A DNA stretch of 64,000 nucleotides from Oculina patagonica (lineage: Eukaryota), in the NCBI RefSeq assembly GCF_052425735.1, contig NC_135769.1:32240001-32304000 (forward strand), in the 5' to 3' direction. The first letter of the stretch is position 1, and every line of letters begins with the position of its first letter. Of this stretch, positions 3,901 to 60,408 are shown in pieces. Under the pieces are notes generated by a model. It was not told the DNA's origin and searched no databases. It saw only the letters and a list, made by a program, of their open reading frames with translations. Both the position numbers and the translations under genes were made by a program.

Positions 3901-6421
3901 ATAGAAAATAGTGCTGTCATTTCAAAACACAAATGACTGTGCTTTAATGTCTACTATCCACGTTAAGATATGGATATTATATATGTTGTGGTTCAAATGT
4001 AACTTTGGTTTAAAATTTTTCAAACCAGTTTGATTTTCATTTCCCATTGTTTCAGATTATGTTAATGAATATGGGACAATGAAATATGAAAATCAAACTG
4101 GTTTAAAAAATTCAACCAAAGATAAATTTGAACCACAACATATATATCTTTTAAGTTGTTCTCCTGTACATAACAGGTTTGAAGTATTTTTATCCTTGTT
4201 TGTCCATTCTACATTTATCTTTTGTCGCTATAATTCTTATATCGGGGTACATTTTACTTTTGGGCTTATGAAACATGTTCGTCATAACCAGGATTTCGTT
4301 ATGTCCAGGTTTGTTACATCGAGGTTCTGTTCCAAACATTTTACTGTAATTAATTTTTGGCCAAGCTGAGGAATATGGTTCGTTATTCCGAGGACTTTGT
4401 TGTAAAGAGGTTCCTTAAATTGAGGTTCCAGGCACGGCAGAGCCGGGGGGCTGGGGGGGGGGGGGCTTTAGCCCCCCCCCCCCAAATTTCCAAAAAAATA
4501 AAGACTTACTAAGAGAAAAGTCTTTTAAGCCCCCCCACTTCAAGTCACTAGTCAGCCCCCCACTTGGAAAATTGCTCCGCCGTCCCTGGGTGAAGCTGCT
4601 TAGCATAAGTTAAAGATTTCTAACCTTTGATTGGTATATAGGATTTTCAATCTGAAATGTTGCCTTCATTGCTTCTGGATACATGAATGCTTTGTACAAA
4701 GACTGCAGAGGAAATAATAAAATTATTTATTAATTTTTTATCAGAATTACTAAAAACAATTTATTAGTCAAGAATGTTCTTGCTGCCCGTTTAAAAAGTT
4801 TGACTTCATAAAAAAAATGTGGTCCATTCAAACAGTTCAACAAACACACTCAAACACTTTTAAATCACTGCTCTTTATCATCTACATGTACACATTAAGT
4901 TGAAGTTTGTGCATTGTTCAGTCATGTTTAGTTCATGTACTAAGCAACTGTACTAGAAGCAAATGTACTAGAAAAAGTTTAGCAAACCAGCAAACCTGAG
5001 CATAGGCCAACTTGTATTCATCAACTTCTGGATGTATCTGTGTTAGCTGTCCATAGCTAGAAAAACAAGATACATAACTATTATACAAACTTTAACTGCT
5101 GCAAACAAGTTTAACAGCTGCTTTCTATAAGAAAGGTCATACACAAAAGTTTCTCAGTACCCCCCTCTTTTTACACTGCAGCACTGCAGCAATGTTTAAT
5201 CCCATCTTTCAAAACAGATGTTTTTTTTTCTTTGATTTTTTAATTTTGCTCTGGCTTATGAAACAATCCCTTCTCCATATGCTAGGGAGGGCATATAACA
5301 TGACATAATTTTCAGATTTAGTCTTCATAGCCCTGGACTAAGTACTTACCAGTCAGCTGCTGCATCAAAGCTTTGAACCTGAAAATAGCAGTAACCTAAA
5401 AGCGAGAGCGCTGCTCTTGACTGAAACAAAAAAAGACAAAACGATCATTTAACACATTGATTAATGGTACAGTCATCAGTGACTAAGCTAGTGAAGTCAG
5501 TAGCTATCAGAGTCTACTTACAGAACTAAGCAATAAAACTAAATAAATTATCCCCAATGGCAAATGATTAATATTATTATGTACCTTAGAATGATTTTCC
5601 AGCTCCTGTGATAGGATTTGAATAGCTTCATGGAACTTCTGATTCTTGATCTGTGAGATAATACAATATGATTTCAAGCAGAGTAAATCTTTTTGGATAT
5701 AAATTCATTTCTTTTTTACCAACATCAGGGCTTGGAATAACCTGAACACCAAGTCACTCTCAAATTTTGCTTGCCTACATGATGGTTGCACGCTTGTCTT
5801 ACCGGTAGTTTACTTTTCAGTATGATTTAGTTAGCAGATGACTTGCAAGCCAGGACCATTTCCCACTGGGCAAGTTAGAATGAAAAGCAAACATCAAACT
5901 AATACTTAAAATTAGCAGTGAAAATCCTAGATCAGCTGTATTCTGCCTCATAGCTACTTGCCCAAAATTTTAAGGTTGGCGTATTTTGAAGTGGTCAGGT
6001 GTGTTCCAGTTAAGCAGATTCATGTACTCTTCACTCCTCTCCACACTTCGTATTGCTGCAAATATCTTTTTTTCATCCACAAACACTGCACGCACCTCCC
6101 CTTCCCCCTACCAACCCCAACCCCCTTCATCCCTCCTAACAATATCACAAGCATATACACAATGAAAATGCTTCTTAACCAAACGCTTGCTGCATTCTAG
6201 GATCGATAACTCAGATACAATTAAAAAAAATTCATTTTGCGACTGATTTATTGCAGGATTTTTTGGTTTTAGCACGATGTTTACAGAGTTCATTTTGTTC
6301 CCGAGCAACCGATGTCAACAATAGGCAATCATTTTAACACGATAAGTTTAACGTAAAAATCACTTACCATTGCATAAACTGTTGTTGTATATTCTCCCTC
6401 TTTGACTTGCACACCCGCCAT
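581..6421 (-). CDS. TTC30: Tetratricopeptide repeat protein 30 / IFT70 (fleer, DYF-1), first 12 coding exons (269 aa); 3' part continues off the window
   Basis: GT-AG exons 6368-6421, 5585-5650, 5350-5420, 4996-5056, 4625-4702, 3825-3881, 3651-3719, 3334-3400, 2681-2785, 1519-1577, 1324-1393 and 581-630 splice in frame. Product: MAGVQVKEGEYTTTVYAMIKNQKFHEAIQIL...SRAALSLLGYCYF...DLSYNIALCFYSLKQYAPALKHIADIIERGIRDHPELSVGMTTEGIEVRSVGNT..LHETALIEAFNLKAGIEYQLKN..AQEALTDMPPRAEE, hallmark TTC30 sequence. Confidence 0.96.
861..1203 (+). mobile_element. tRNA-derived SINE with Deu/Nin-like central domain and LINE (L2-type) 3' tail
   Basis: Pol III A box (TAGCTCAGTTAGCTGG) and B box (GGTTCGAACCC). Central GTCTTCTCGG..GACGATAAACCGTAGGTCCCGTC..GGACGTTAAAGAACCCAC..CACTATTCG..CCCGGTGT resembles the DeuSINE/Nin domain. 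Tail TGTAAAGCGC..GCGCTATATAAAT followed by (CATTAT)n. Confidence 0.85.
1635..2098. mobile_element. Non-autonomous repeat with short inverted repeat and long terminal hairpin (HINE/Helentron-like architecture, family uncertain)
   Basis: TTATTATATGGC (~1637) is inverted as GCCATATAATAA (~1964). Imperfect hairpin ~1978-2093 (ACTTATTAACC..GGTCATTACAGGGGAATCTCAGACC / GGTCTGAGATTCCCCTGTAATGACC..GGTTAATAAGT). Internal (GAGAGC)n. Confidence 0.55.
2967..3160. repeat. GC-rich ~60-bp direct repeat, two copies ~129 bp apart, in a TTC30 intron
   Basis: CCAGGGTGGCTACCCCC(A/G)GTACCACCTGATCTGTACTCCCCC..CCCCCTCCTGG at ~2967 and ~3096. Confidence 0.8.
3978..4146. mobile_element. Palindromic MITE
   Basis: TATATGTTGTGGTTCAAAT..TTTGGTT..AAACCAGTTTGATTTTCAT mirrored by ATGAAAATCAAACTGGTTT..AACCAAAG..ATTTGAACCACAACATATA; flanked by TA. 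Confidence 0.8.
4429..4587. mobile_element. Short CAGG-terminal MITE (hAT-like) abutting a decayed repeat
   Basis: 15-bp TIR CAGGCACGGCAGAGC / GCTCCGCCGTCCCTG (2 mismatches); internal polyG/polyC; no clear TSD. Confidence 0.6.
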
Positions 6422-6659
6422 CACGAAAATCAAGCGTAAAAATGGAAGAAATGTTCGTAAAATTTTAACCCATGAACACAAAATATTGGAGAAAAATATT
6501 GTCGAGATCCCGGATAACAGACTTGTAACTAGGTCCCAGTACCTCGCCAAGGTACATGGAAGGCCTGGCAAATTTTGTTTCTAGTTCATTCTTTTAATTA
6601 ATTTGATTGTCACTTCGTCCCGCTCGCACCGGCTTGCAGCTGTGATAAACTTCATTCAG
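6297..6659. promoter_or_regulatory. Bidirectional promoter region (TTC30 / Canopy-like) with candidate RFX X-box
   Basis: TTC30 ATG at 6421 (-) and a + strand donor CAG|GTAATG at 6659/6660 are under 250 bp apart. X-box-like GTTCCCGAGCAAC at 6297-6309 lies in TTC30 intron 1. Confidence 0.5.
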
Positions 6660-8227
6660 GTAATGTAAGAATTCTATTTTGCTGTGTTTCTACATTTCTC
6701 TTCTTCGATTTATGTAATTGCTCGAAACAAGTTCTTGAGTTGGTGACCCAGGGCTAAAAATTCTCGATCGTGTGCAGCAGTTTCAGATTTCAAGCCCAGA
6801 GTGTCTAAGCTACCTACTTCGAATTGATTCCTACGTGTATAGTAGTGATAGAACGAATTAGTTGCGGGCCATTGGCGATTCTTGTTTTTAGACAAAGCGC
6901 TTTGAGACCTGAAAGTTATCTTTTTGTTAATTTTTTTGCGTTCAACTCCCGCAAGTAAGCCATCAATTTAAGCTTACGTTCTTGTTCTTTTTAGGAAAGA
7001 TTTTATCTTTGTTGGATTATTTTACACACTTTGACTCGTCGGCAGACAAATCCTAGTGAGAGGTTATACATAAATTAGTTATCTTATGGGTGGGTAAACA
7101 AATATTTGGGATATGGACTGATGAAATCACATTACTAAACCGTTAATCTCTGAACTTTTTTGCTGTAACTTTATATAGGTGACTGGATTTTGTTTTCATT
7201 TTGTACTAAAAGTCTATAACCTCAAGTTTTGAATTATTTATCACTTGAAAATGCTTTGTTGAATCAGTTCACTGCAATTAACGCAAGAGCAGAAATAAAT
7301 AGATTAGTGAAATTTAAGAAAAAACTTATTCAAACATGCTATATTTTCAATCTCAGTTAACTCAATTATTTTACAAAATAAATTTTAAATTACCAGATTC
7401 AATTAAAATTATGTATTTTACTGTAAAATAGACTCTGTCAGGATTTTGGTAGCCATTTCAAAATGCATTGTTTCTATGAGAATCCAATTTTGCATGTATT
7501 TTCTTTATAGGAAATAATTTCCCAGCAGTTTACACAAACCCTGCAGTCATAAAAAAATCTATAAAACCTGAACTGGATTTATGTTCACCAAAAGTATCAA
7601 AATATTGGACAGTAAAACTGGAGGCAAATAACAGTTATTGTGAAAACTTTGTTATCATTATTTTTTTAAGCTAAACACAATATATAATTATTATAACTTT
7701 TGATACAGATTTATAGATAAATATAAAATAGTAGATATACTATTTAGTAAAAATGAAATATATTTATTTACAAATCTCCATAGAAATTCACAGTAAGGTA
7801 GTGACTGAACAAATTCAGGCAGGCAGAGAAAGCACTATATCAAACAATATTTATACTGACACCAAAAAAAAAAATTCTTTGGTAACAAACAGAAAAATAG
7901 TGCCTACAAATATATTAACTGAAAGCGACCCTTGGCTTTTTTTTTAACTGAGAAACAATCTACTGTAAGTTTATTGCAAACTCTATACTCTAAATGAAAA
8001 TCCACATAAATCAGAACCTGTTTGACCTGATAAATGTCATTTTTAACTCATTAGTTCTACCAGCCAATTGAAATAAGCCAAGTTTAAAATATGGAAAAAC
8101 TAATGAGAGAAAACTGATTGAATTGTTTTATACAAGATTGAGATGTGAAGGAGCTGCTGCTTCTTGGGAACATTCAAGTCAAATATAATTATATCTAAAT
8201 TTTGTCAATTCCTTTTCAGTTTTAAAA

Positions 8228-40300: not shown

Positions 40301-42384
40301 AGCTAAGGATTAGGCAAAAATATCAAAAAATATCACCCGCATCGTTCTGGTCGCGTGCGGCTGTGTGTTGGTTGTGCAGAATTTCTTTCGCGGAAATACC
40401 TCACTCAGCGGATTTCCCGCGCAGATCGGCTATCAGAAGATTAGCTACGCCAGCCAATTAAAAGCCAGCGTTCCCACGCCTTGTCAAGTTTGATTGACCA
40501 ATAGAAACCTTATTCAAACAATTACAGATTGTCCATTGAGCTGTCAGATCAGACGCTATGTTATCCAGGGGTGCCGCAGATACCTCATCAAGTAATTTTT
40601 CTCTGAATGAATTAAATTCTAGCGAGTCTAGCTTGTGAGAACTACAGCGATTTTCTTATTCTTTAACCTAAGCCTACATCTGGATCTAGTTCTCTTTGAA
40701 TATCTTTTTGGTTGTCTTGTTTATTGGCGCCAAAAATCCATTCATCGGCTGGAATTTTTCCCGCGTTTAATTGAGGTAAGTCATTTACAAAACCAACTGT
40801 TCATTTGACTGTCTTCATGTTTGTCTAAGAATCTAGGAACGATTTGAACAAAACCGGCGTGATTTCGCCTCTTAATAACCTGTCCATAAATCGTATTGCT
40901 TTCATATTAAATTTTCAATTATTGTCCGATATACCTCTTCAATGCATCTCTAAACAGGACGATTTAAATTCAATTATCTGCTTCGAGTATGGCAAGAAAA
41001 AATGTTTAGTCTTCGGTGCACGCGAACCGGCCGCATGCATTTGTTATTGTTCATGTCAGTAGTCCTATTTATGTACGTATTGGATTTTTGAACACCGTCT
41101 CTATTCTCGAAAGTACTTAACATACACAGATGGAAGTGTCAACTTTATCTCGGGGTTTATATCGATTGGCAATGTTTTTTACACTTACGTTTTGTTCGCG
41201 ATAGGCAAATGATAAGCCGATAGTTTCACGAAAGAGTTAAGAAAGACCCTATGGATCCCGTCTATGAAATTTCTCCAGCCGGGTAGTGAGTGAATTAGTC
41301 CAGATTACTAAATGCATGCGCAATTTTTGTTTTGTCTCTAAAATATTTCTTCTTACATTCTGAGTGGAAACGTCTGGGGTCAATTTTAAAGGTTATTACA
41401 CCTTTAGCAGCTGTTTTTCAAAGACCACCCCAAAATCGTTTTGATAAACACAGCATCCTCGTACCCAGGGTCTTCGTTCCCTTTGACTCGAGGTACGAGA
41501 ATGTAAACACAGTTTAGGCAAAGGTTGCTATGGGTTGCTTGCAATAAATGGAAGGCGTTACGCGTGACCGGATTGCGTGACCTTAACAAAAATTGAGAAC
41601 GATGAAATGGGACAAAGAAAAGTTTTGAGTTTCCGACTCATTGTAATAATAAGAAAGCAGAAAAATGTGTTTTAGAGGAGATCAAGTTGTAAGGCAGACT
41701 TTACAGCTGCAAAAACAGATTGTACAGCGTTTAAGATAAGGCTTCGACGTGGGGGTTTTTTCAGTTTGAAGAACAATGTTTTCTACAACTTAGCGCCATA
41801 ATGGTGTTATTTTGGAAAATGCCAGAAAAATTCCTTTGGAACTTGATTTTAATCAGTTGTCATCACCACTATCAACACTCAATTAGCGCATATTTCCGTC
41901 CTTTTAATCCGGACAGATCAGGATTTATATCATGTTATAAGTTCATAAATCCTGTCTATAGCCGTAAAAAGTCCTGCCTTTCTTTGAAAAACAAAAATAT
42001 TGTTCTGTTTCTTTATAAACTGCGAGCAATCTGTTACTTTTCCTAGCGTGCGAGGCGAATACAAGAACGAACTTACTTGCGAAGGACCTTGCGCATTGAC
42101 AACGCTCCTGCCGCGAGAAGCGCGGGTAGAGCGAAGGAAAAAGAAAGGGACTGCAGAGAAGCCTCGCCCTATTTTCCACCTAGTTTTCCACTCATTTGCA
42201 TAATTATTTCCTTTCCGGTCACGCGGGGACTTGAGGAAAAAGACCGACTTCTCGCATTCTAGCTATTTTCTTCTCTCTACATAACATTGCACTATTCTTT
42301 GTGATATACCATTGCTAATTCATGGGTATTCTTGTTAGTCTTTGTGAACGATCAGACGAACTTCAACCAAGAGAAACATTCACA

Positions 42385-45300
42385 ATGAGTGACAACATTG
42401 GCCAAGCGCTCGCCTTCATTGCATCAGCTAATCAAGAGCTCAGGAAACAACGAACTGAGGAAGCAGTCATTCAGTTCTGCAAGGCGTATGCGTTGGAGCC
42501 TTGTCTTGTCAAGGATCACCTGGTCACCTTGCCGCAAAACCCGTTACAAACTGTACTTTGTACCCTGGAGGACTGGTGCATTTGTGGGGGCGACTCTGCG
42601 CACTTGTTGCTGAATTCAGGAGTAACGCTTACTCTTGAACAAATCTGCGATCTCATTACGTCTCCAGGACTACGCCCAGACAGCCGCGTTGCATGGTCGA
42701 CGAAACTCAGATTGCAGATGCGAAGTAAAAGTTATATGGAAGCCATAACAACATGCTCTGAGGCGGTGAAGGTATTTTCCAATCACAGCAATGTCGTTTT
42801 CTTCCTGGTTCATCGCGCTATGGTTTACCTGCTTCTGAACGAGAAAGGCTATGCAGTGAATGATTTCATCGCCGCGTGTGACAAAGATTTTGACGCTGGT
42901 TTAGCTTGCATCAAAGAAACAGGAGTTAAACTATTCCCTGCTATTTTAGAAGCGCTTTACGAGGCAATTGCCAGACTTGCCAAGAAGTCAATAAGCTTTA
43001 GCGTAGACGAGAGGTTCTTGCTAATCAAAATTGACCGCATCGTTGTAGGCTTGAACCCCGAGGATTCTGCCACCCTTGGAGACTGCGCAAGTCACATGAT
43101 TAAACTGAACCAGTTCAAGGAAGCGGTGGTCCTGCTGTCGGATGGAATAGATCACGTGACTTCATCCGGGAAAAAAGAGAGAGCGGAAGCAGTGGAGCTG
43201 ATTCTTCAGAGAGCGCAGTGTTACTTAGCTCTGAAGGAAACCGAGTCTGCTCTGAATGACTATCTCTGTGCTGCGGCCATTGATGAAGACGTTACTCAGA
43301 TCACCATACTTGCGTCACCACACCAACATCAAAATAGTATTGCTGCCCTTTCAAAGCAACTTTCCTCCGAGCTTCTCACTCACTACCGCCTCAAAGTCAA
43401 GCTGAACAGCGCATGCTCAGTTGACACTAAAATCACCGCTGACAGCCTTGATAGAGCAGCGCAGATGTACCGGCTGTTGTATCTTATGGACAGCAATAAT
43501 GTCGACGCTTTAGTGAACGCTGCAGAGTGCTTGAAGCTTCAAGACAAAGATGCCGATGCAATCAAAACACTTGATTTGGTGCTCACACTGCGCCCATTGT
43601 GTTCCAAAGCTTACTACACGCGCGCTTTTTGCCACATGAAAACCGCTGACATGACCAACGCTCTCGCAGACTTTAACATGACACTCGACATCCAGCCAAG
43701 CTTTGTTCAAGCACTTTGCGGCCGCGCGTTTGTTTGGCTCATGAGCGGGAAACTCGAGAAAGCAGCCAAAGACTTGACAGCTGCCAGTGGGATCTCGGTT
43801 GGTGCTACAGTTACCTGGATAACGGATCTGTCAGACTGTGAACAAGAGACAATGAAAAATCAAATAAAGGAATACTTGGTAACGGCCTCGAAGAAGCGTC
43901 AACAGAACGAGGATTCGCGCAAGGAAGCCTCGCTTGTTCCTTTAGGCGATATCTTAACCCGCGCGTTTGCCACGGACTTCGAGTGCCATCTCGTGTTCGC
44001 GGAGATTTTACAGTCGTTGTGTAAAATGGATGAAGCGCAGGCGATTCTTGTTCGCTTGATAACACACAATCCCGATGACTATTTAGCTACTTTGCATCTA
44101 GCTGCGTTGAAAATGAGAAGGAAAAGAACAGCTGACGCACTAGAAGACATTTGCGCTCTCCTGAAAACGATCGGCGAGGAAAAATTGTCGAGCGCTATGC
44201 TGAGATTAACTGATGACGATCGCGCGCGTTTAACGCGCGAGGCGCATTGCGAGGGAGTGCAGAGATTCAACACCCGTTCTGGAGATGCCTCGATAGAAGG
44301 ATATTTCTCCGTGGCAATCGCTGCTTCTCCAAACAAAGCGTTTGAATCTTACGTTTGGCGTGCAAAGTTGAAAGCTTTGAAGGGAGAAACTGACTTAGCC
44401 ATCAAGGACCTTACTTCAGTGCTTGCTAAGAAGCCAAATCACGTTGAAGTGTTATGCCAGCGAGGACTTTTGTTTACCCTTAAGAACAACCGGAAGGCAA
44501 GTTATCAAGACTTGTTGCAAGCTCTACTTCTCAATACTCAAGCACTGAAGATTTTCATTCTTTCACTTCCGGAAGATCGGAAACGTCTTATTTTAGCAAC
44601 TCTTGAAGACTGTGCTCAAACGCTGTTTTCTCATTACCTGTCAAGAGGCATTCGCTCCAAGTTCATCCTAAAGCTTTGTCATTTATTGGTTCAAATTGGC
44701 GGTGACGTGGTGTCTTACCACAGCATGTACGCCGACGGACTGATTATTTTCGAAGATTACCGAAGAGCTGCCGAAGAGCTCGACATCACTGAACGACTTT
44801 GTCCCGAAGATGTGTCGGTCCTAAGCCGAAGTGGCCTTGTCCATATAAAACTGAATGAAGTTGAAACTTCAGCATCGAAGTTTCAGAAAGTGGCTAAAAT
44901 CGATTCTGAAGCAGTAAACTTTGCGCTTAAAGCTTTGAATCCGGCACAGAAGCAAAGTCTCTTTCAAGAAGCTGTCGAGAAAGCTAATCAACATACCAAC
45001 TTGAACCAAAACGACCATGCCCTGGGATTTTTCTCGCTTTCTGTTGCCGCTTCTGATGGTCAGCGGCTAGAGATTTTGCGCATGCGATCTAAATGTTTTG
45101 AACGACTTCGACGCTTCCAGGAAGCCATTGAAGACATGACGTCTGTCATTACATCCGGGATACCCATTGTTGGCGATCTCGTGGCACGTGGTAATCTTCA
45201 CTTACTCAATGACAATTTCAATGACGCATGCCTAGACTTTGTTGTTGCCATGGATACACAAGAAGTGACGGCCATGACACTGATTTCGTCCTATCCCGGG

Positions 45301-45480
45301 AGAGAAGCTGCCATCAAAGTATTTATCAAGGCTGCAATCTCTAATCTTAACCATAAGAAATTCTCTGATGGCCTCACGGTTTGCACGTACGGACTGAAGT
45401 TCGACCCCAACAACATCGAACTGAAAACTCTCAAGCGAAAGTTTGAACTTGGAGTAAGCAACAAGTGTTTTATTCAGTAA
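42385..45480 (+). CDS. TTC34: Large TPR-repeat protein, TTC34-like, ~1031 aa, single coding exon, C-terminal CaaX (CFIQ)
   Basis: Uninterrupted ORF with many TPR helices (AYYTRAFCHM..ALADFN, ALCGRAFVWL, LCQRGLL, LVARGNLHL). The probable start is 42385, after acceptor TTGTTAG (42338) with an upstream donor GAG|GTAAGT (~40775); ATG 42322 is likely intronic. Gene name is from recalled size and architecture. Confidence 0.7.
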   Translation: MSDNIGQALAFIASANQELRKQRTEEAVIQFCKAYALEPCLVKDHLVTLPQNPLQTVLCTLEDWCICGGDSAHLLLNSGVTLTLEQICDLITSPGLRPDSRVAWSTKLRLQMRSKSYMEAITTCSEAVKVFSNHSNVVFFLVHRAMVYLLLNEKGYAVNDFIAACDKDFDAGLACIKETGVKLFPAILEALYEAIARLAKKSISFSVDERFLLIKIDRIVVGLNPEDSATLGDCASHMIKLNQFKEAVVLLSDGIDHVTSSGKKERAEAVELILQRAQCYLALKETESALNDYLCAAAIDEDVTQITILASPHQHQNSIAALSKQLSSELLTHYRLKVKLNSACSVDTKITADSLDRAAQMYRLLYLMDSNNVDALVNAAECLKLQDKDADAIKTLDLVLTLRPLCSKAYYTRAFCHMKTADMTNALADFNMTLDIQPSFVQALCGRAFVWLMSGKLEKAAKDLTAASGISVGATVTWITDLSDCEQETMKNQIKEYLVTASKKRQQNEDSRKEASLVPLGDILTRAFATDFECHLVFAEILQSLCKMDEAQAILVRLITHNPDDYLATLHLAALKMRRKRTADALEDICALLKTIGEEKLSSAMLRLTDDDRARLTREAHCEGVQRFNTRSGDASIEGYFSVAIAASPNKAFESYVWRAKLKALKGETDLAIKDLTSVLAKKPNHVEVLCQRGLLFTLKNNRKASYQDLLQALLLNTQALKIFILSLPEDRKRLILATLEDCAQTLFSHYLSRGIRSKFILKLCHLLVQIGGDVVSYHSMYADGLIIFEDYRRAAEELDITERLCPEDVSVLSRSGLVHIKLNEVETSASKFQKVAKIDSEAVNFALKALNPAQKQSLFQEAVEKANQHTNLNQNDHALGFFSLSVAASDGQRLEILRMRSKCFERLRRFQEAIEDMTSVITSGIPIVGDLVARGNLHLLNDNFNDACLDFVVAMDTQEVTAMTLISSYPGREAAIKVFIKAAISNLNHKKFSDGLTVCTYGLKFDPNNIELKTLKRKFELGVSNKCFIQ

Positions 45481-48145: not shown

Positions 48146-51892
<3,747 letters not shown>

Positions 51893-54310: not shown

Positions 54311-56292
54311 AAACAATATTTTTAGCCAGTGTCAACTTATTAATTCGAATTTTTAACATGCCTGGCTACCAGACCCGAACATTTTTAATGATAATAAGGT
54401 GTATGAGCCTTTATGCGTCGCCTGCCGCTCAAAGGACAGATCATGATGATGTATATTTTTACAAAACAATATTTTTTTTCAATTTGTATGATTTTCAACT
54501 CATAATTTGAGAGCTCGGCTTATAACAAAAGATTTCACAATTCGTGTTATAATTCGAGATTCCGATAAAAAAGCGAGATAGCATATAGCACCAGATCTCA
54601 ATTTCGACAACTAGAAATTTCGACTAGTTCCTCCTGTTCCTGGCGTATCTTGACTTACAATACGAGATCTTGCATTATGTGGAAAGTTTGCATATCATCG
54701 CGGCGGAGATGTGAGTTATCTGAGGTGCTTGGACATTTTAGACCCTACCTGAGAACGTTCCACTTTTCCGCTCTTGTTTAAACATGTATTCATTGGCATA
54801 ATAAATTTTATCCTTCGGTCACAACTCTTTAAACTGTTTTTAACTTGCGCAAATTAAACCCTAGTGTGGATCATGCAGCTTCCGTAGTCTGTCTGTATCA
54901 GCTTCGTAAAAGAACGGTAAACCGTTCAGTTTTATCCGTTTAACAAACGCAGATAGATCATCGTTTAACAGTTTCTTTCTTGTTACCAATGATTGTCTTT
55001 CGGTAGGAGCTTTTCTTTTTTTGGAGAAGGACCAGAAAAGACGAATGGTAACCATTTTATATAGAGAGGGTTTTGGCGTCGGTGTTAATACCGTAATGAT
55101 TCGATTTAGTGTCCTCCTCCCAAAAAGCACTCCCTCAATCAAACGCCCCCATTTAGGGGTGTTCCTGTGATGTAAGCGTCGCTTTTCCAATAACCCCCCC
55201 TCCCCCCTATTCCAATATGTGCATGTTACAATATGCTCCCATCTCCCAAGATCTCGAATTATAAGTCCACATCATGGATTGCTAGAAAGATTGGTTGATG
55301 ACCCTTGCCTGTCACCGTAGAATCGAAGTACTCTACATGTAATGATCTTCGTGTCTCTGCCACAGGCATTGTTTAAGTCGTCACATAAAATAACGCCATG
55401 CTATCCAGAGGTTAAGCCAATCACAGCTTGGCTTCCATAAATCGGGATCAAAAACGACTACAGGCCATGCCTTATCGGTGACGCGCGGAACGAAAATAGC
55501 AAACACAAACCATGGAACAGAGAAAAGAAAAATAATAATGATGAAGCTTTTGCTAGGAATGAATGATAAGCCACTACTTCATCGAAAAAAGCCAATAAGG
55601 AAGAGAAAAAGGCCTTAAAATCGACGACGTTGACATTTTTACGCCAGCGGTGCGCGTCATTCTAGCAAGACAGCAAAGAAGTGAGTATCAAAAGTATTTA
55701 TGCCGCGTTTGATTTTAGACATTCCTGACAAAAAGATAAAAAAGCACGTTTTACTGATGTGCAAAATTGGCCAGACAACTACTCATTTTCGTCCTGAAAC
55801 ACTTAAATAAATTCAATTTGTCGGTAATCATTCGGTTTACAAAAGTGAAAGTTTAGCCCCCGGAAGTATTTCGTTACAGGTTATAACGGACCAAGCTAGG
55901 TAATTCCTTTCTTCCCCTTCCACTCGGTTTCTTAGAAAAATATTAACTAGCAAAACTCTAAAACTCCTTTATCAGCCCAGCTTAGCAAAATAAACGAGGC
56001 ATAACTAAGGATATAATTTTAATGTTAAAAGTTACTGATGATCGGCGCTGTTTTCCGGCATATTTTCATGGTTCAGTTCTGTCCATTCACTGATTTATAA
56101 GGAGGTCAACTCGAAAGCTGTCCTTCAGTGCCGGAAATGAGGGCAAAGGGGAGCCTAACGGTTCTCTCGGTTTGGAGGTCCTGCAACGTTTCTTTCTTTT
56201 AAATCATCACATAACCTGCGTGAAAGAATCGCGCAGTATAAAGTGATGCTATTTAAGCCTGCTTAAAAACTCTTTTTTCTTATCAAGGAATC

Positions 56293-59063
56293 ATGTCCCG
56301 AACAAGCTCGGTCTTCTTTGCTACCATGTGTGTGCTAATCATAAGCGTGACGTCATCGGCTGAGACAAAAAGGGAGGCAAAAGTTCTTATTCTCGGGGCA
56401 GGTCTGTCAGGAATTACCGCTGCTAAAACGCTCCTAGATAACAACATTACAGATTTCTATGTTCTGGAGGGTCAAGATTACATTGGTGGGAGAATTCACG
56501 CCATGCAGTTCGAAGGAATTACTATTGAGACAGGAGCTAACTGGCTTCATTTGCTGAACGATGAAGATACAGCGCCTCTTGCAGAACGGTTAATAAAAAC
56601 AGAGATGACTGGCGTTTGGTGCAATTATTCTGACATCATCATCAGGTTGGTTTGAAAACTTATTATAACTATGCTGAGACAAAGTTGCATTTGTATACTT
56701 GAATAAAATCATATCTTTCAAATCGACTGCAGAAATCAAACAATACAAACAGCAGCAACAAACATAACACATGGAATACGCATGGTTTGAAAAAGAATTC
56801 ATCAAAAATTAACTTGACGCTTCAAATCGAAGTAAACCTCAGAATAATATTTTACTAACGCGGTAGAAAAACACCAGGGAGGTATAAAGTATATTTGAAA
56901 AATTAGGTCAATACCTTCTACATGGGCCATCCATTACGTAGCTCTGAGTTTGTGATGCTTATTTCCCTGTTCCCCTTTTAAACACTTTCTTGAGGTTCGC
57001 TTCTTTACGGAGCCAGTCACAAATCGAAGTTAATAAGCAAAAACAAGCGACCGGCGCCAAGTGCATGGAGGAAACGTGTAGTTCACACTGATGCTTTCTT
57101 CTATTGCATGGTTCGTCTAAAAGAGCACATTGTAAAAATTTCTTAATTTGTACCAGTTGTAGAGCTCATGCTATGCAGGCAGAAAAGTAAAACTAGGACG
57201 CGATTTGCGCGGGACGATGGCGAGGACCTGAAAATGCGCGCGTGGGGAAGCTCCAAACTCAACTGACTCGCGGCCTGTCGCCGGCCGGGGTTACCTGTTG
57301 CGCCGTGCAAAGTAATTTACATGATTGCTGTACGGGAATCCGATATGTCAGAGATTTGGTTGACCTTTCATTTAAACTACCGAGAAGAGTTAGCATTTCT
57401 CAATCCTTGGGGCAATAAGAGCGCCCACTGTAAAACTTCGTTTTAGATAATCCATGCGTTTTATTGCTATGTTTTTAATCTTTCAGAGACGAAACTGGTG
57501 AAGACATCACAGACTGGGAAGTCATTCGCAAGTTTGACAAAGAAATTGAAGAAAAACTCGAAGAATTCCAGTTAGCCAGGAAAAGGAGACACGAGCCAGA
57601 CATTCCTGCTCGAGTTGGATTGCAGTTAATGGGATGGAAGAGTAATCAACCGATTGAAAAAGTGCTAGAGTATTTTAGACTTGACTTTGAGCATGCTAAA
57701 CAGCCTGATCTGGTCTCGTTTTATCAGCTATTCAGCCGGGGAAAAGACTTTTTTGTTTCAGATCTACAAGGTCTGTGGTCTCTTTATGAAGATTTGTACA
57801 AGCCTGTGATGGAGCGCACCATACTCCAGGAAACTGTTGAGAAAATAAGATACTCTGACCACTCAGTGGAGCTCCACACAAAAAGTAACGAAACTTTTGT
57901 AGCAGATTACGCCCTGTGTACTTTTAGCTCTGGGGTCTTAGCAAGTGACACGATAACCTTTGACCCACCCCTTCCTAAGTGGAAAAGAGAAGCCATTTAT
58001 AAAAACCCGATGTCTGTGTACACGAAAATTTTCTTGAAATTTCCAAGAAAATTCTGGGATGATAATGAATACATTTTGCACGCTTCCAAACGGCAAGGTT
58101 ATTTTTCAGTGTTCCAGGACTTGGACAGACCGGGGATTTTACCAAAAAGTGGTATTTTATTAATTACTGTCACTGGAGACGAAGGAAGAAGGATTGAAGA
58201 ACAAACAGACCACGAAACAAAGACTGAGATCATGAAAACTTTGAGGAAAATTTACGGCGAGAAAATTCCTGATCCTACAGGTATGTACGTATAAGTAAAA
58301 AAAAATGCTCCTTAAAAAACAAAATACGTTTAATGAAGCGCTTGAATAGCCTTGAATCACTGAGTAGTTACATAAATATATTTTGTATAGTTTTGCAGTC
58401 GGTACGTAGTCAGTCAGTCAGACAGTCAGCCAGAGAGACAGTCAGTCAGCCAGTCAGCCAGCCAGTCAGTCAGTCAGTTAGTCAGTCAGTCAGACAGTCA
58501 GACAGTCAGACAGTCAGACAGTCAGTCAGACAGTCAGACAGTCATACAGTCAGACANNNNNNNNNNNNNNNNNNNNNNNNNNNNNNNNNNNNNNNNNNNN
58601 NNNNNNNNNNNNNNNNNNNNNNNNNNNNNNNNNNNNNNNNNNNNNNNNNNNNNNNNNNNNNNNNNNNNNNNNNNNNNNNNNNNNNNNNNNNNNNNNNNNN
58701 NNNNNNNNNNNNNNNNNNNNNNNNNNNNNNNNNNNNNNNNNNNNNNNNNNNNNNNNNNNNNNNNNNNNNNNNNNNNNNNNNNNNNNNNNNNNNNNNNNNN
58801 NNNNNNNNNNNNNNNNNNNNNNNNNNNNNNNNNNNNNNNNNNNNNNNNNNNNNNNNNNNNNNNNNNNNNNNNNNNNNNNNNNNNNNNNNNNNNNNNNNNN
58901 NNNNNNNNNNNNNNNNNNNNNNNNNNNNNNNNNNNNNNNNNNNNNNNNNNNNNNNNNNNNNNNNNNNNNNNNNNNNNNNNNNNNNNNNNNNNNNNNNNNN
59001 NNNNNNNNNNNNNNNNNNNNNNNNNNNNNNNNNNNNNNNNNNNNTCTGTCTGTCTGTCTAGGT

Positions 59064-59133
<70 letters not shown>

Positions 59134-59532
59134 TTAGTCAGTCGGTCAGGCAGCCAGTCAGTCAGTCAGTCAGTTTGCTTTATTTCACTGTCAGACTTTG
59201 TTTATGCCGGCAGCGTATCTGTGATGCACTTCCTCACTTTTCTTTTCGCAGCGATATTCTATCATCGCTGGTCTAAAGATCCGTTAACACTAGGCGCCTA
59301 CAGCGAGCCAGTAGTGGGTACGACTCCACAGGATTTTGAAAACCTGGGGGAGAAACTGGGCCGACTTTATTTCGCTGGGGAAGCGACGAGCAAAGACTGG
59401 TACGGGTATATGCAAGGCGCTTACCTGACGGGTCAAGACAAAGGCCAAATGATCGCTGATGATTTAATGCAAATTGAAGAACAGAAAACTGGATATTGGT
59501 TTGATGAAACAGGCGTTCACGAGGAACTATAA
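56293..59532 (+). CDS. FAD-dependent polyamine oxidase-like amine oxidase, 475 aa, with signal peptide and C-terminal HEEL
   Basis: Exons 56293-56645, 57487-58280 and 59252-59532 are in frame. Motifs: VLILGAGLSGITAA (GxGxxG), LEGQDYIGGRI, GANW, VYTKIFLKFPRKFW, RRIEEQTD, RW..DP..GAYS, GRLYFAGEATS..YGYMQGAYLTG. Confidence 0.92.
58408..59175. repeat. Compound tetranucleotide microsatellite (CAGT/CAGA/CAGG) spanning an assembly gap (58557-59044)
   Basis: Directly visible repeats on both sides of the N run. Confidence 0.95.
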
Positions 59533-60408
59533 TTTGATTGCTTACATAGTGGAATGCAAGAAGTTACTAATTTCTTTTTATTTTATTATTTTTATTTTAT
59601 AAAACTCAGTGATGATCTATTAGGTTAATTAAATAAAAGGAATCAGTTTTTAAGATTTTGTTTCTCCACTTACTACGAAATTCTAGCTTTAATTGAGAAG
59701 ATCTAACAGAAGCATCCTCTTACAGTAGATTGAATAGTCACGTTCTCAGCCCTCTCTCATCATCGGAAAATTGTGAGAACTTGGACATAGTCAAGAAATG
59801 TGTGCAGCAATGTTAGTTATGTCCACAAACACTGACTCGTCCGCAATGATCCTGTCGTTTCCAAATACGAATGTGAAGCCAGAGAGTTAACTTAAGTATT
59901 TTTAAGTGCTAAAATAAACTCGTGAAAGGTAAGCAAATTGAAAAGATTCTAAAGATTTCACTTACTATACAGGGGAAATTTACTGTTTTCACCGCAATTT
60001 TATCCTTTCCATATATAATAATAATAATAATAATGCTAAAAAATAAAAATAATTTCCGTTAGTTTCTGTTAGTCAGAAGTTCTGCTTGTGGTAACATCAC
60101 AGGGCAAGAAAGCCGGACGTCGAATATTTTCAAATTTTAAAATCTCTTTTTTACATTTTCTGAGTGCTTTGGATGATTTAGACTATATTTTTCCTCCGGA
60201 AATTGTTGAAATTGGGTAGACTTTCTCAAAGACCGTTCCATGTGTTCAACTTCGTCACTTTTGTTAACAGTTGTTTACGTCCGGCTCGTAAGAGTCGACT
60301 CACAGTGTGGCAAGTCTAGATTGGGAGGATTTAATTTGTGGGATAAATGAACAAGTAAATGACAGCGTACCTCCAGGAGAACCTGATTGGTTAAAAATCA
60401 GTGTTTAA

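Follow-up and report, generated by a model that had tools for sequence, protein, structure and literature searches.

A maize-type polyamine oxidase of stony corals with a predicted signal for retrieval to the endoplasmic reticulum

A three-exon gene near the end of a 64,000-nucleotide stretch of the Oculina patagonica genome (contig NC_135769.1, positions 32,240,001 to 32,304,000, hereafter the window) encodes a protein that, judging by homology, is a soluble amine oxidase dependent on flavin adenine dinucleotide (FAD) and belongs to the maize polyamine oxidase (PAO), or Clade I, type. An initial annotation had proposed that this enzyme is retained in the endoplasmic reticulum (ER), an idea that finds support as far as sequence analysis reaches. 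Because the protein is assigned to the maize PAO family, carries a conserved signal peptide, ends in a conserved tetrapeptide of the form xxEL (any two residues followed by Glu-Leu) and has no membrane helix, we regard retrieval to the ER lumen as the best explanation of the coral protein, and as a fairly probable one.

All introns of the gene have GT/AG borders (Table 1). The spliced coding sequence of 1428 nucleotides specifies 475 residues, beginning with MSRTSSVFFATMCVLIISVTSSA and ending in GVHEEL before the stop codon, and its product (P0151) is identical to the RefSeq "uncharacterized protein LOC144633196 [Oculina patagonica]". All three exons match the Pfam profile PF01593 (Amino_oxidase), at positions 1-60, 186-372 and 378-436. 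The assembly gap in intron 2 is flanked by tandem tetranucleotide repeats, (AGTC)n-like with AGTC/AGAC units at 58408-58553 on one side and (AGGC)n at 59060-59173 on the other, and these microsatellites probably caused it. The possibility of a hidden exon in the gap was ruled out. Exon 2 closes at position 372 of the Pfam profile and exon 3 opens at 378. In maize PAO numbering, exon 2 stops at residue 386, the split codon supplies 387 and exon 3 continues from 388, and the full-length alignment runs through the junction without a gap ("ipdptaifyhrw / vpdatdilvprw"). Intron-less transcript-type contigs of related corals are likewise continuous at this point (IPNPSAIFYHRW and IPEPTAIFYRRW). Since all three kinds of alignment cross the junction without interruption, no coding sequence has been lost in the gap.

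Maize PAO (ZmPAO) is the best solved relative of each exon, with an E value of 2.9e-44 for exon 2 against 3.9e-4 for mouse PAOX. In a full-length phmmer search of the PDB it scored 271 bits, over query residues 30-451 and chain residues 6-455, followed by LSD2 (120 bits), SMOX (101), PAOX (83) and Fms1 (63). An AlphaFold2 model of the coral protein, built from a 77-sequence alignment, reached a mean predicted local distance difference test (pLDDT) score of 93.5 and a predicted template modelling score of 0.89; its best PDB fold match in Foldseek was 1b37 (template modelling score 0.83-0.86, 35% identity). The resemblance to ZmPAO1 put forward in the initial annotation thus holds for the window protein, for which it was tested, and the segments quoted there (VYTKIFLKFPRKFW, LLITVTGDEGRRIEEQTD, GRLYFAGEATS..YGY.QGAYL and GANWLH) are all present.

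The active site is intact. Fourteen residues of VYTKIFLKFPRKFW, around the catalytic lysine, are identical to ZmPAO, and the lysine of YTKIF, which had been read as the catalytic one, is indeed kept as K298 (ZmPAO Lys300). The site residues correspond as follows (ZmPAO = P0151): E62=H86, E170=E186, Y298=Y296, K300=K298, T402=A398, F403=Y399 and Y439=Y435. The equivalents of E170, Y298, K300, F403 and Y439 therefore read E, Y, K, Y and Y, and K298, Y296, Y399 and Y435 are the same in all 4 xxEL members. An aromatic residue at 298 and an aromatic pair at 403 and 439 are the hallmark of Clade I, whereas in animal PAOX and SMOX (Clade II) position 298 is N, T or V and position 439 is T (PMC7576179 Table 1). 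The coral protein also has the GAGLSG FAD-binding motif and the flavin amine-oxidase domain that characterise Clade I, and it departs from Clade II in Y296, Y435 and the presence of a signal peptide. Our trees (below) contain ZmPAO-like relatives only.

The equivalent of ZmPAO Glu62 had been read as a histidine "as in back-conversion PAOs". The histidine is there (H86), but the step from it to back-conversion is weak, because E, Q, H and A all occur at position 62 in Clade I (PMC7576179 Table 1), and H or Q is found there across the whole retrieved animal family, paralogs without an ER signal included. It is H in 3/3 xxEL members that cover the position and in 5/5 sister paralogs. The same residue bears on whether the enzyme, even if resident in the ER, acts in vivo on something other than polyamines, such as another amine or the amine groups of ER cargo. 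We give this a slim chance: His instead of Glu at position 62, a partly missing ZmPAO 174-182 region (a 5-residue gap) and a second-best match to LSD2, a protein-acting enzyme, lean towards it, yet the tunnel residues E170, Y298, K300, F403 and Y439 are kept and identity to ZmPAO peaks around them. Since the active site is intact, we propose that the luminal enzyme would oxidise a polyamine-like substrate (spermine, spermidine or thermospermine) to hydrogen peroxide (H2O2) and an aminoaldehyde. Both spermine and thermospermine are produced by corals (PMC12803844). AtPAO1, a Clade I enzyme of plants, uses norspermine, thermospermine and spermine (PMC4923165), which makes thermospermine a candidate substrate. 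Elsewhere in the family the catalytic lysine is not universal: Thr replaces the Lys300 equivalent in 1/5 scleractinian paralogs with hydrophobic tails, and the lysine is missing in 8/58 other animal members. Some of these copies may lack catalytic activity.

Both targeting signals named in the initial annotation, an N-terminal signal peptide and a C-terminal GVHEEL, are present. Residues 4-25 form the sole stretch of P0151 with a Kyte-Doolittle hydropathy of at least 1.6 over 19-residue windows; no other hydrophobic segment was found, and by this heuristic the protein has no membrane helix. Small residues occupy positions -3 and -1 of a putative cleavage site between TSSA and ETK, and a protein cleaved there would begin at the point that corresponds to residue 1 of the maize crystal chain. 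In the structural model the signal peptide has pLDDT values of 64-69. Signal peptides, called throughout by hydropathy and residue heuristics, were seen in 4/4 members of the xxEL clade with an available N-terminus, for example in P0157, in the exon-1 open reading frame (ORF) of contig L008 and in L010. The apparent lack of a signal peptide in P0154 was rejected as an exception: its called start is an internal Met, and the contig holds an in-frame upstream start, MPRANSIFLVSMCFLIMST. The gene call is misleading in this respect, as L010:161-220 (a Logan contig of SRR6255879) holds the missed upstream signal peptide.

At the other end of the P0151 model, a helix (residues 436-463) is followed by coil over residues 464-475, with pLDDT values of 45-60; with the tail modelled as disordered, the tetrapeptide should be accessible to a receptor. 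HEEL fits the PROSITE pattern [KRHQSA][DENQ]EL. Raykhel et al. found K, R, H, N and aromatic residues equally effective at position -4 and S and Q less effective; at -3, every residue except Pro is tolerated (PMC2140024). Gerondopoulos et al. describe HDEL and HEEL as canonical signals on human FKBPs (PMC8248988).

The ending is conserved among corals. Sequences were gathered by an exon-3 ORF search together with full-length searches, which beyond the named species drew on Logan SRR runs, TARA Pacific metagenomes and European Nucleotide Archive assemblies. In line with the initial proposal, 32 coral sequences end in xxEL: HEEL in 18, RNEL in 5, RDEL in 2, QEEL in 2, and HDEL, REEL, HKEL, KDEL and YDEL once each. 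Across the 30 distinct tails, L at -1 and E at -2 are invariant (100%), with E, N, D or K found at -3 and H, R, Q, K or Y at -4. Conservation drops to 20-60% over positions -5 to -20, in a linker of variable length. By the rules of PMC2140024, all 32 endings lie inside the range that was shown to bring a reporter to the ER, at least in part. An EL ending occurs in 3/161 family members of at least 400 residues, and all three belong to the xxEL clade. In two related corals, transcript-type contigs share this last exon and read HEEL, a stop codon and a 3' untranslated region. On both points, the ending of the orthologs and the last exon, the outcome favours the initial annotation. These data bear directly on the notion that HEEL arose by chance or is neutral, or that it is an annotation artefact of the gap or of a wrong last exon. 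That notion can draw on the assembly gap inside the gene and on a prior chance of about 3e-4 for the PROSITE motif at a random C-terminus; it is hardly credible given a gap that is intronic and costs no residues, an xxEL ending in 32 related sequences, HEEL in the transcript contigs of relatives and a clade that is defined independently of its tail.

Several observations accompany this set. A Porites lobata protein (P0216) was considered as an exception within the xxEL clade and rejected: its model breaks off within exon 2, with an alignment that reaches P0151 residue 340, and its ending is therefore uninformative. This public gene model is misleading, with the C-terminal third missing. A last-exon ORF at L009:4213-4629 (P0363) has a linker of the hydrophobic-tail group, ACQILPSDSECKA, yet ends in KSRDLKDEL; it may have acquired an ER signal in a second, separate event, or be a product of the assembly or of a frameshift. 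On TARA Pacific coral metagenome scaffolds (L006:586-2445 and 4386-8085; also L005 and L007), two PAO genes lie head to tail, the RNEL gene being about 2 kb upstream of a paralog with a short ADDLLSTK tail, an ending that is neither xxEL nor hydrophobic. The family is thus tandemly arrayed in that coral.

In a maximum-likelihood tree (IQ-TREE, LG+C20) from which the tail columns were excluded, the xxEL proteins form a single clade with support of 100/99. It comprises the Oculina protein, Stylophora P0196, two transcript-derived proteins, an HDEL gene and an RNEL gene that were spliced from genomic contigs in this analysis, and the truncated Porites lobata model. Its sister is a scleractinian clade with KSEATFAARSAAGVLVFSILCSLLWM-type tails (98/94; both clades together 99/97), which contains two more Oculina genes on the same chromosome record, and the next branches outward are Actinia and Nematostella "PAO7", likewise hydrophobic-tailed. 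P0269, one of the Oculina paralogs, has a hydrophobic window at residues 473-497; P0151 has no C-terminal one. Tails in which small residues precede a hydrophobic stretch of 13-20 residues occur in P0269 and P0271 (Oculina), in P0215 and P0229 (Stylophora) and in many animal members. This pattern, of the type that directs attachment of glycosylphosphatidylinositol (GPI), suggests that the hydrophobic-tailed members are polyamine oxidases anchored at the cell surface.

On the simplest reading, the ER form would go back to a gene duplication within the lineage of stony corals, later than their divergence from the sampled sea anemones, with an ancestral hydrophobic, GPI-signal-like tail then likely swapped for a retrieval signal. 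The retargeted form was found among stony corals only; the sampled anemones, octocorals and a jellyfish are without it. Porites represents one of the two main lineages of the Scleractinia, Oculina and Stylophora the other. Since the tree joins the RNEL gene to a Porites protein, the ER form is probably older than the separation of these lineages.

The hydrophobic tails of the sister clade also lend substance to a different view, in which the xxEL proteins are mainly extracellular like maize PAO and the sister paralogs, and the tetrapeptide merely slows or gates export, for example by holding an ER reserve that is let out under ER stress or when retrieval is saturated. Clade I enzymes were ancestrally extracellular (PMC7576179), the tails of the sister clade resemble surface anchors, HDEL cargo is retained less efficiently in cells than KDEL or RDEL cargo (PMC8248988), and the weak variants QEEL and HKEL occur. 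We nonetheless consider a mainly extracellular enzyme unlikely, if well short of negligible. E and L are strictly kept in 30/30 distinct tails and H or R dominates at -4, which points to selection for efficient receptor binding, and H at -4 binds the receptor about 10-fold more tightly than K (PMC8248988). Some further points weigh against the favoured reading more generally: AQEEL gives more Golgi localisation, many xDEL-like proteins remain in the ER even without the motif (both PMC2140024), QEEL and HKEL count as weaker signals or fall outside the PROSITE pattern, and the xxEL species that can be named are Oculina and Stylophora, the wider taxonomic breadth resting on tree position.

For the ER-retrieved enzyme that we favour, we propose the following course. 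The signal peptide would bring the protein into the ER co-translationally and then be cleaved, and FAD would be loaded in the lumen, as is assumed for secreted relatives. Protein that escapes to the Golgi would be bound at HEEL by the KDEL receptor and returned, so that the enzyme would build up in the ER lumen and the early secretory pathway and carry out amine oxidation there. To our knowledge, the polyamine oxidases described so far reside in the cytosol, nucleus, peroxisomes, apoplast or vacuole, and none in the ER lumen. If the proposal is true, polyamine catabolism and H2O2 production would take place where disulfides form, and polyamines would have to enter the early secretory pathway. 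A link to oxidative folding or redox signalling, which the initial annotation had raised, is speculation. Sister paralogs in the same genome that differ mainly in their tail, GPI-like in one and xxEL in the other, would offer a clean case of C-terminal retargeting. The most far-reaching scenario, to which we lend little credence, is that stony corals evolved a dedicated ER polyamine/thermospermine oxidase by retargeting a surface-anchored enzyme, that its origin may coincide with that of the group, and that its H2O2 or aminoaldehyde feeds oxidative folding or the cross-linking of a heavy secretory load such as skeletal matrix and mucus. The enzyme would then be a second source of H2O2 in the ER, independent of Ero1 and coupled to polyamine levels.

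The coral gene belongs to a larger animal family. A 2020 PAO phylogeny (Salvi & Tavladoraki) inferred that Clade I was lost in animals (PMC7576179). We retrieved proteins with Clade I-type residues from Anthozoa (several paralogs per genome), the scyphozoan Sanderia, Branchiostoma, three hemichordates, the brittle star Amphiura and the abalone Haliotis. Examples with signal peptides include P0008, P0292, P0305, P0295, P0299, P0311, P0048 and P0031, and many of the genes sit on chromosome-scale records. In a FastTree tree the labelled members of the half that holds these proteins are all animals, and this half is separate from the plant and fungal one. On this sequence evidence, the plant/fungal-type PAO family is widespread in marine invertebrates, which would correct the published view of its loss in animals. 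The NCBI pipeline names some of these proteins "polyamine oxidase 1" or "7". Among omics studies, one of Anemonia mentions a secreted PAO (PMC3141003) and one of Montipora a protein called "MPAO" (bioRxiv 2024.04.02.587798). Our literature search found no analysis of the animal family, its tails or an ER form, and a search for GPI-anchored polyamine oxidases found nothing relevant in animals.

The features of the gene are collected in Table 1. Exon 1 begins with an ATG preceded by in-frame stops and ends at a GT donor at 56646; it matches Pfam NAD_binding_8 as well as Amino_oxidase and aligns to ZmPAO residues 6-71. Exon 3, which carries Tyr399 (= F403) and Tyr435 (= Y439), aligns to ZmPAO residues 390-455. 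A tblastn search of the window with four Oculina paralogs detected the window gene alone and no tandem PAO copy; the paralogs sit elsewhere on the same 33.5-Mb record. Two neighbouring features were seen. An uninterrupted ORF of 1052 residues at 42322-45480 (+), is rich in tetratricopeptide repeats and matched by many Pfam TPR families; located upstream of the PAO gene, it may represent a large gene of one exon. An ORF piece at 48146-48709 (-) matches the C-terminal end of Pfam Solute_trans_a (organic solute transporter Ost-alpha; E 1.7e-13); a neighbouring gene on the opposite strand probably includes it as an exon.

Table 1. Coordinates of the coral PAO gene and its parts, in window positions.
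Feature	Position	Strand	Remarks
Possible core promoter, TATA-like TATAAAG	56237..56243	+	about 50 nucleotides before the start codon; read from sequence
Exon 1	56293..56645	+	residues 1-117 plus 2 nucleotides; signal peptide, start of FAD-binding Rossmann fold
Predicted cleavable signal peptide MSRTSSVFFATMCVLIISVTSSA (residues 1-24)	56293..56364	+	hydropathy, -3/-1 residues
GAGLSG dinucleotide-binding motif (residues 35-40)	56395..56412	+	G35, G37 and G40 nearly invariant (77-sequence alignment)
His86 codon (= ZmPAO Glu62)	56548..56550	+	ungapped alignment GANWLH / GANWVE
Intron 1	56646..57486	+	GT..AG; missing from transcript contigs of relatives
Exon 2	57487..58280	+	residues 118-382; substrate-binding domain with Glu186, Tyr296, Lys298
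Lys298 codon (= ZmPAO catalytic Lys300)	58025..58027	+	alignment at VYTKIFLKFPRKFW
Intron 2	58281..59251	+	GT..AG; contains assembly gap (N) 58557-59044
Exon 3	59252..59532	+	residues 383-475 plus stop; end of FAD domain, C-terminal helix, flexible tail
HEEL (residues 472-475), predicted KDEL-receptor retrieval signal	59518..59529	+	free C-terminus; TAA directly after
Poly(A) signals, AATAAA/ATTAAA-type	59628..59637	+	about 100 nucleotides past the stop codon; pattern scan

Set against known systems, the coral protein shares with ZmPAO1 (PDB 1B37) an FAD amine-oxidase fold behind a signal peptide, 35% identity from end to end, and the conserved E170, Y298, K300 and F403/Y439 aromatic pair. It differs in its animal host, in the His at the place of Glu62 and in a shorter 174-182 region; moreover, the maize enzyme goes to the apoplast without a retrieval signal, whereas the coral protein ends in HEEL. 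In barley, the difference between HvPAO1 and HvPAO2 is located in a C-terminal extension. These two are likewise related PAO paralogs of the secretory pathway with different destinations, the apoplast and the vacuole, respectively (PMC4923165); unlike theirs, the coral destination would be the ER, reached through a KDEL-receptor signal after a split from a GPI-like paralog. The coral gene has 2 introns, compared with 8 reported for plant genes (PMC7576179).

The closest comparison is with the scleractinian sister paralogs (Oculina LOC144633953 and LOC144632113; Stylophora "Polyamine oxidase" P0215 and P0229), which are 57-65% identical to the coral protein and have the same three-exon layout, a signal peptide and H at position 62. 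Their other active-site residues match those of the xxEL proteins, save in the one member with the K300-to-T change, but GPI-signal-like tails of the KSEATFAARSAAGVLVFSILCSLLWM type, small residues followed by a hydrophobic stretch, stand in place of xxEL. Vertebrate PAOX and SMOX (Clade II) are also FAD polyamine oxidases of the same overall fold with His at the Glu62 position; in contrast to the coral protein, they lack a signal peptide, are peroxisomal or cytosolic, fall far below ZmPAO in score (83 and 101 bits vs 271), and differ at positions 298 (N or T) and 439 (T; PMC7576179 Table 1). Finally, the combination of a signal peptide with an [HK][DE]EL ending that the KDEL receptor recognises is found in soluble ER residents, namely the human FKBP family (HDEL/HEEL) and FOXRED2, an ER flavoprotein ending in KEEL (PMC2140024, PMC8248988), although their folds and chemistries are unrelated to those of the coral protein and none of them is an amine oxidase.

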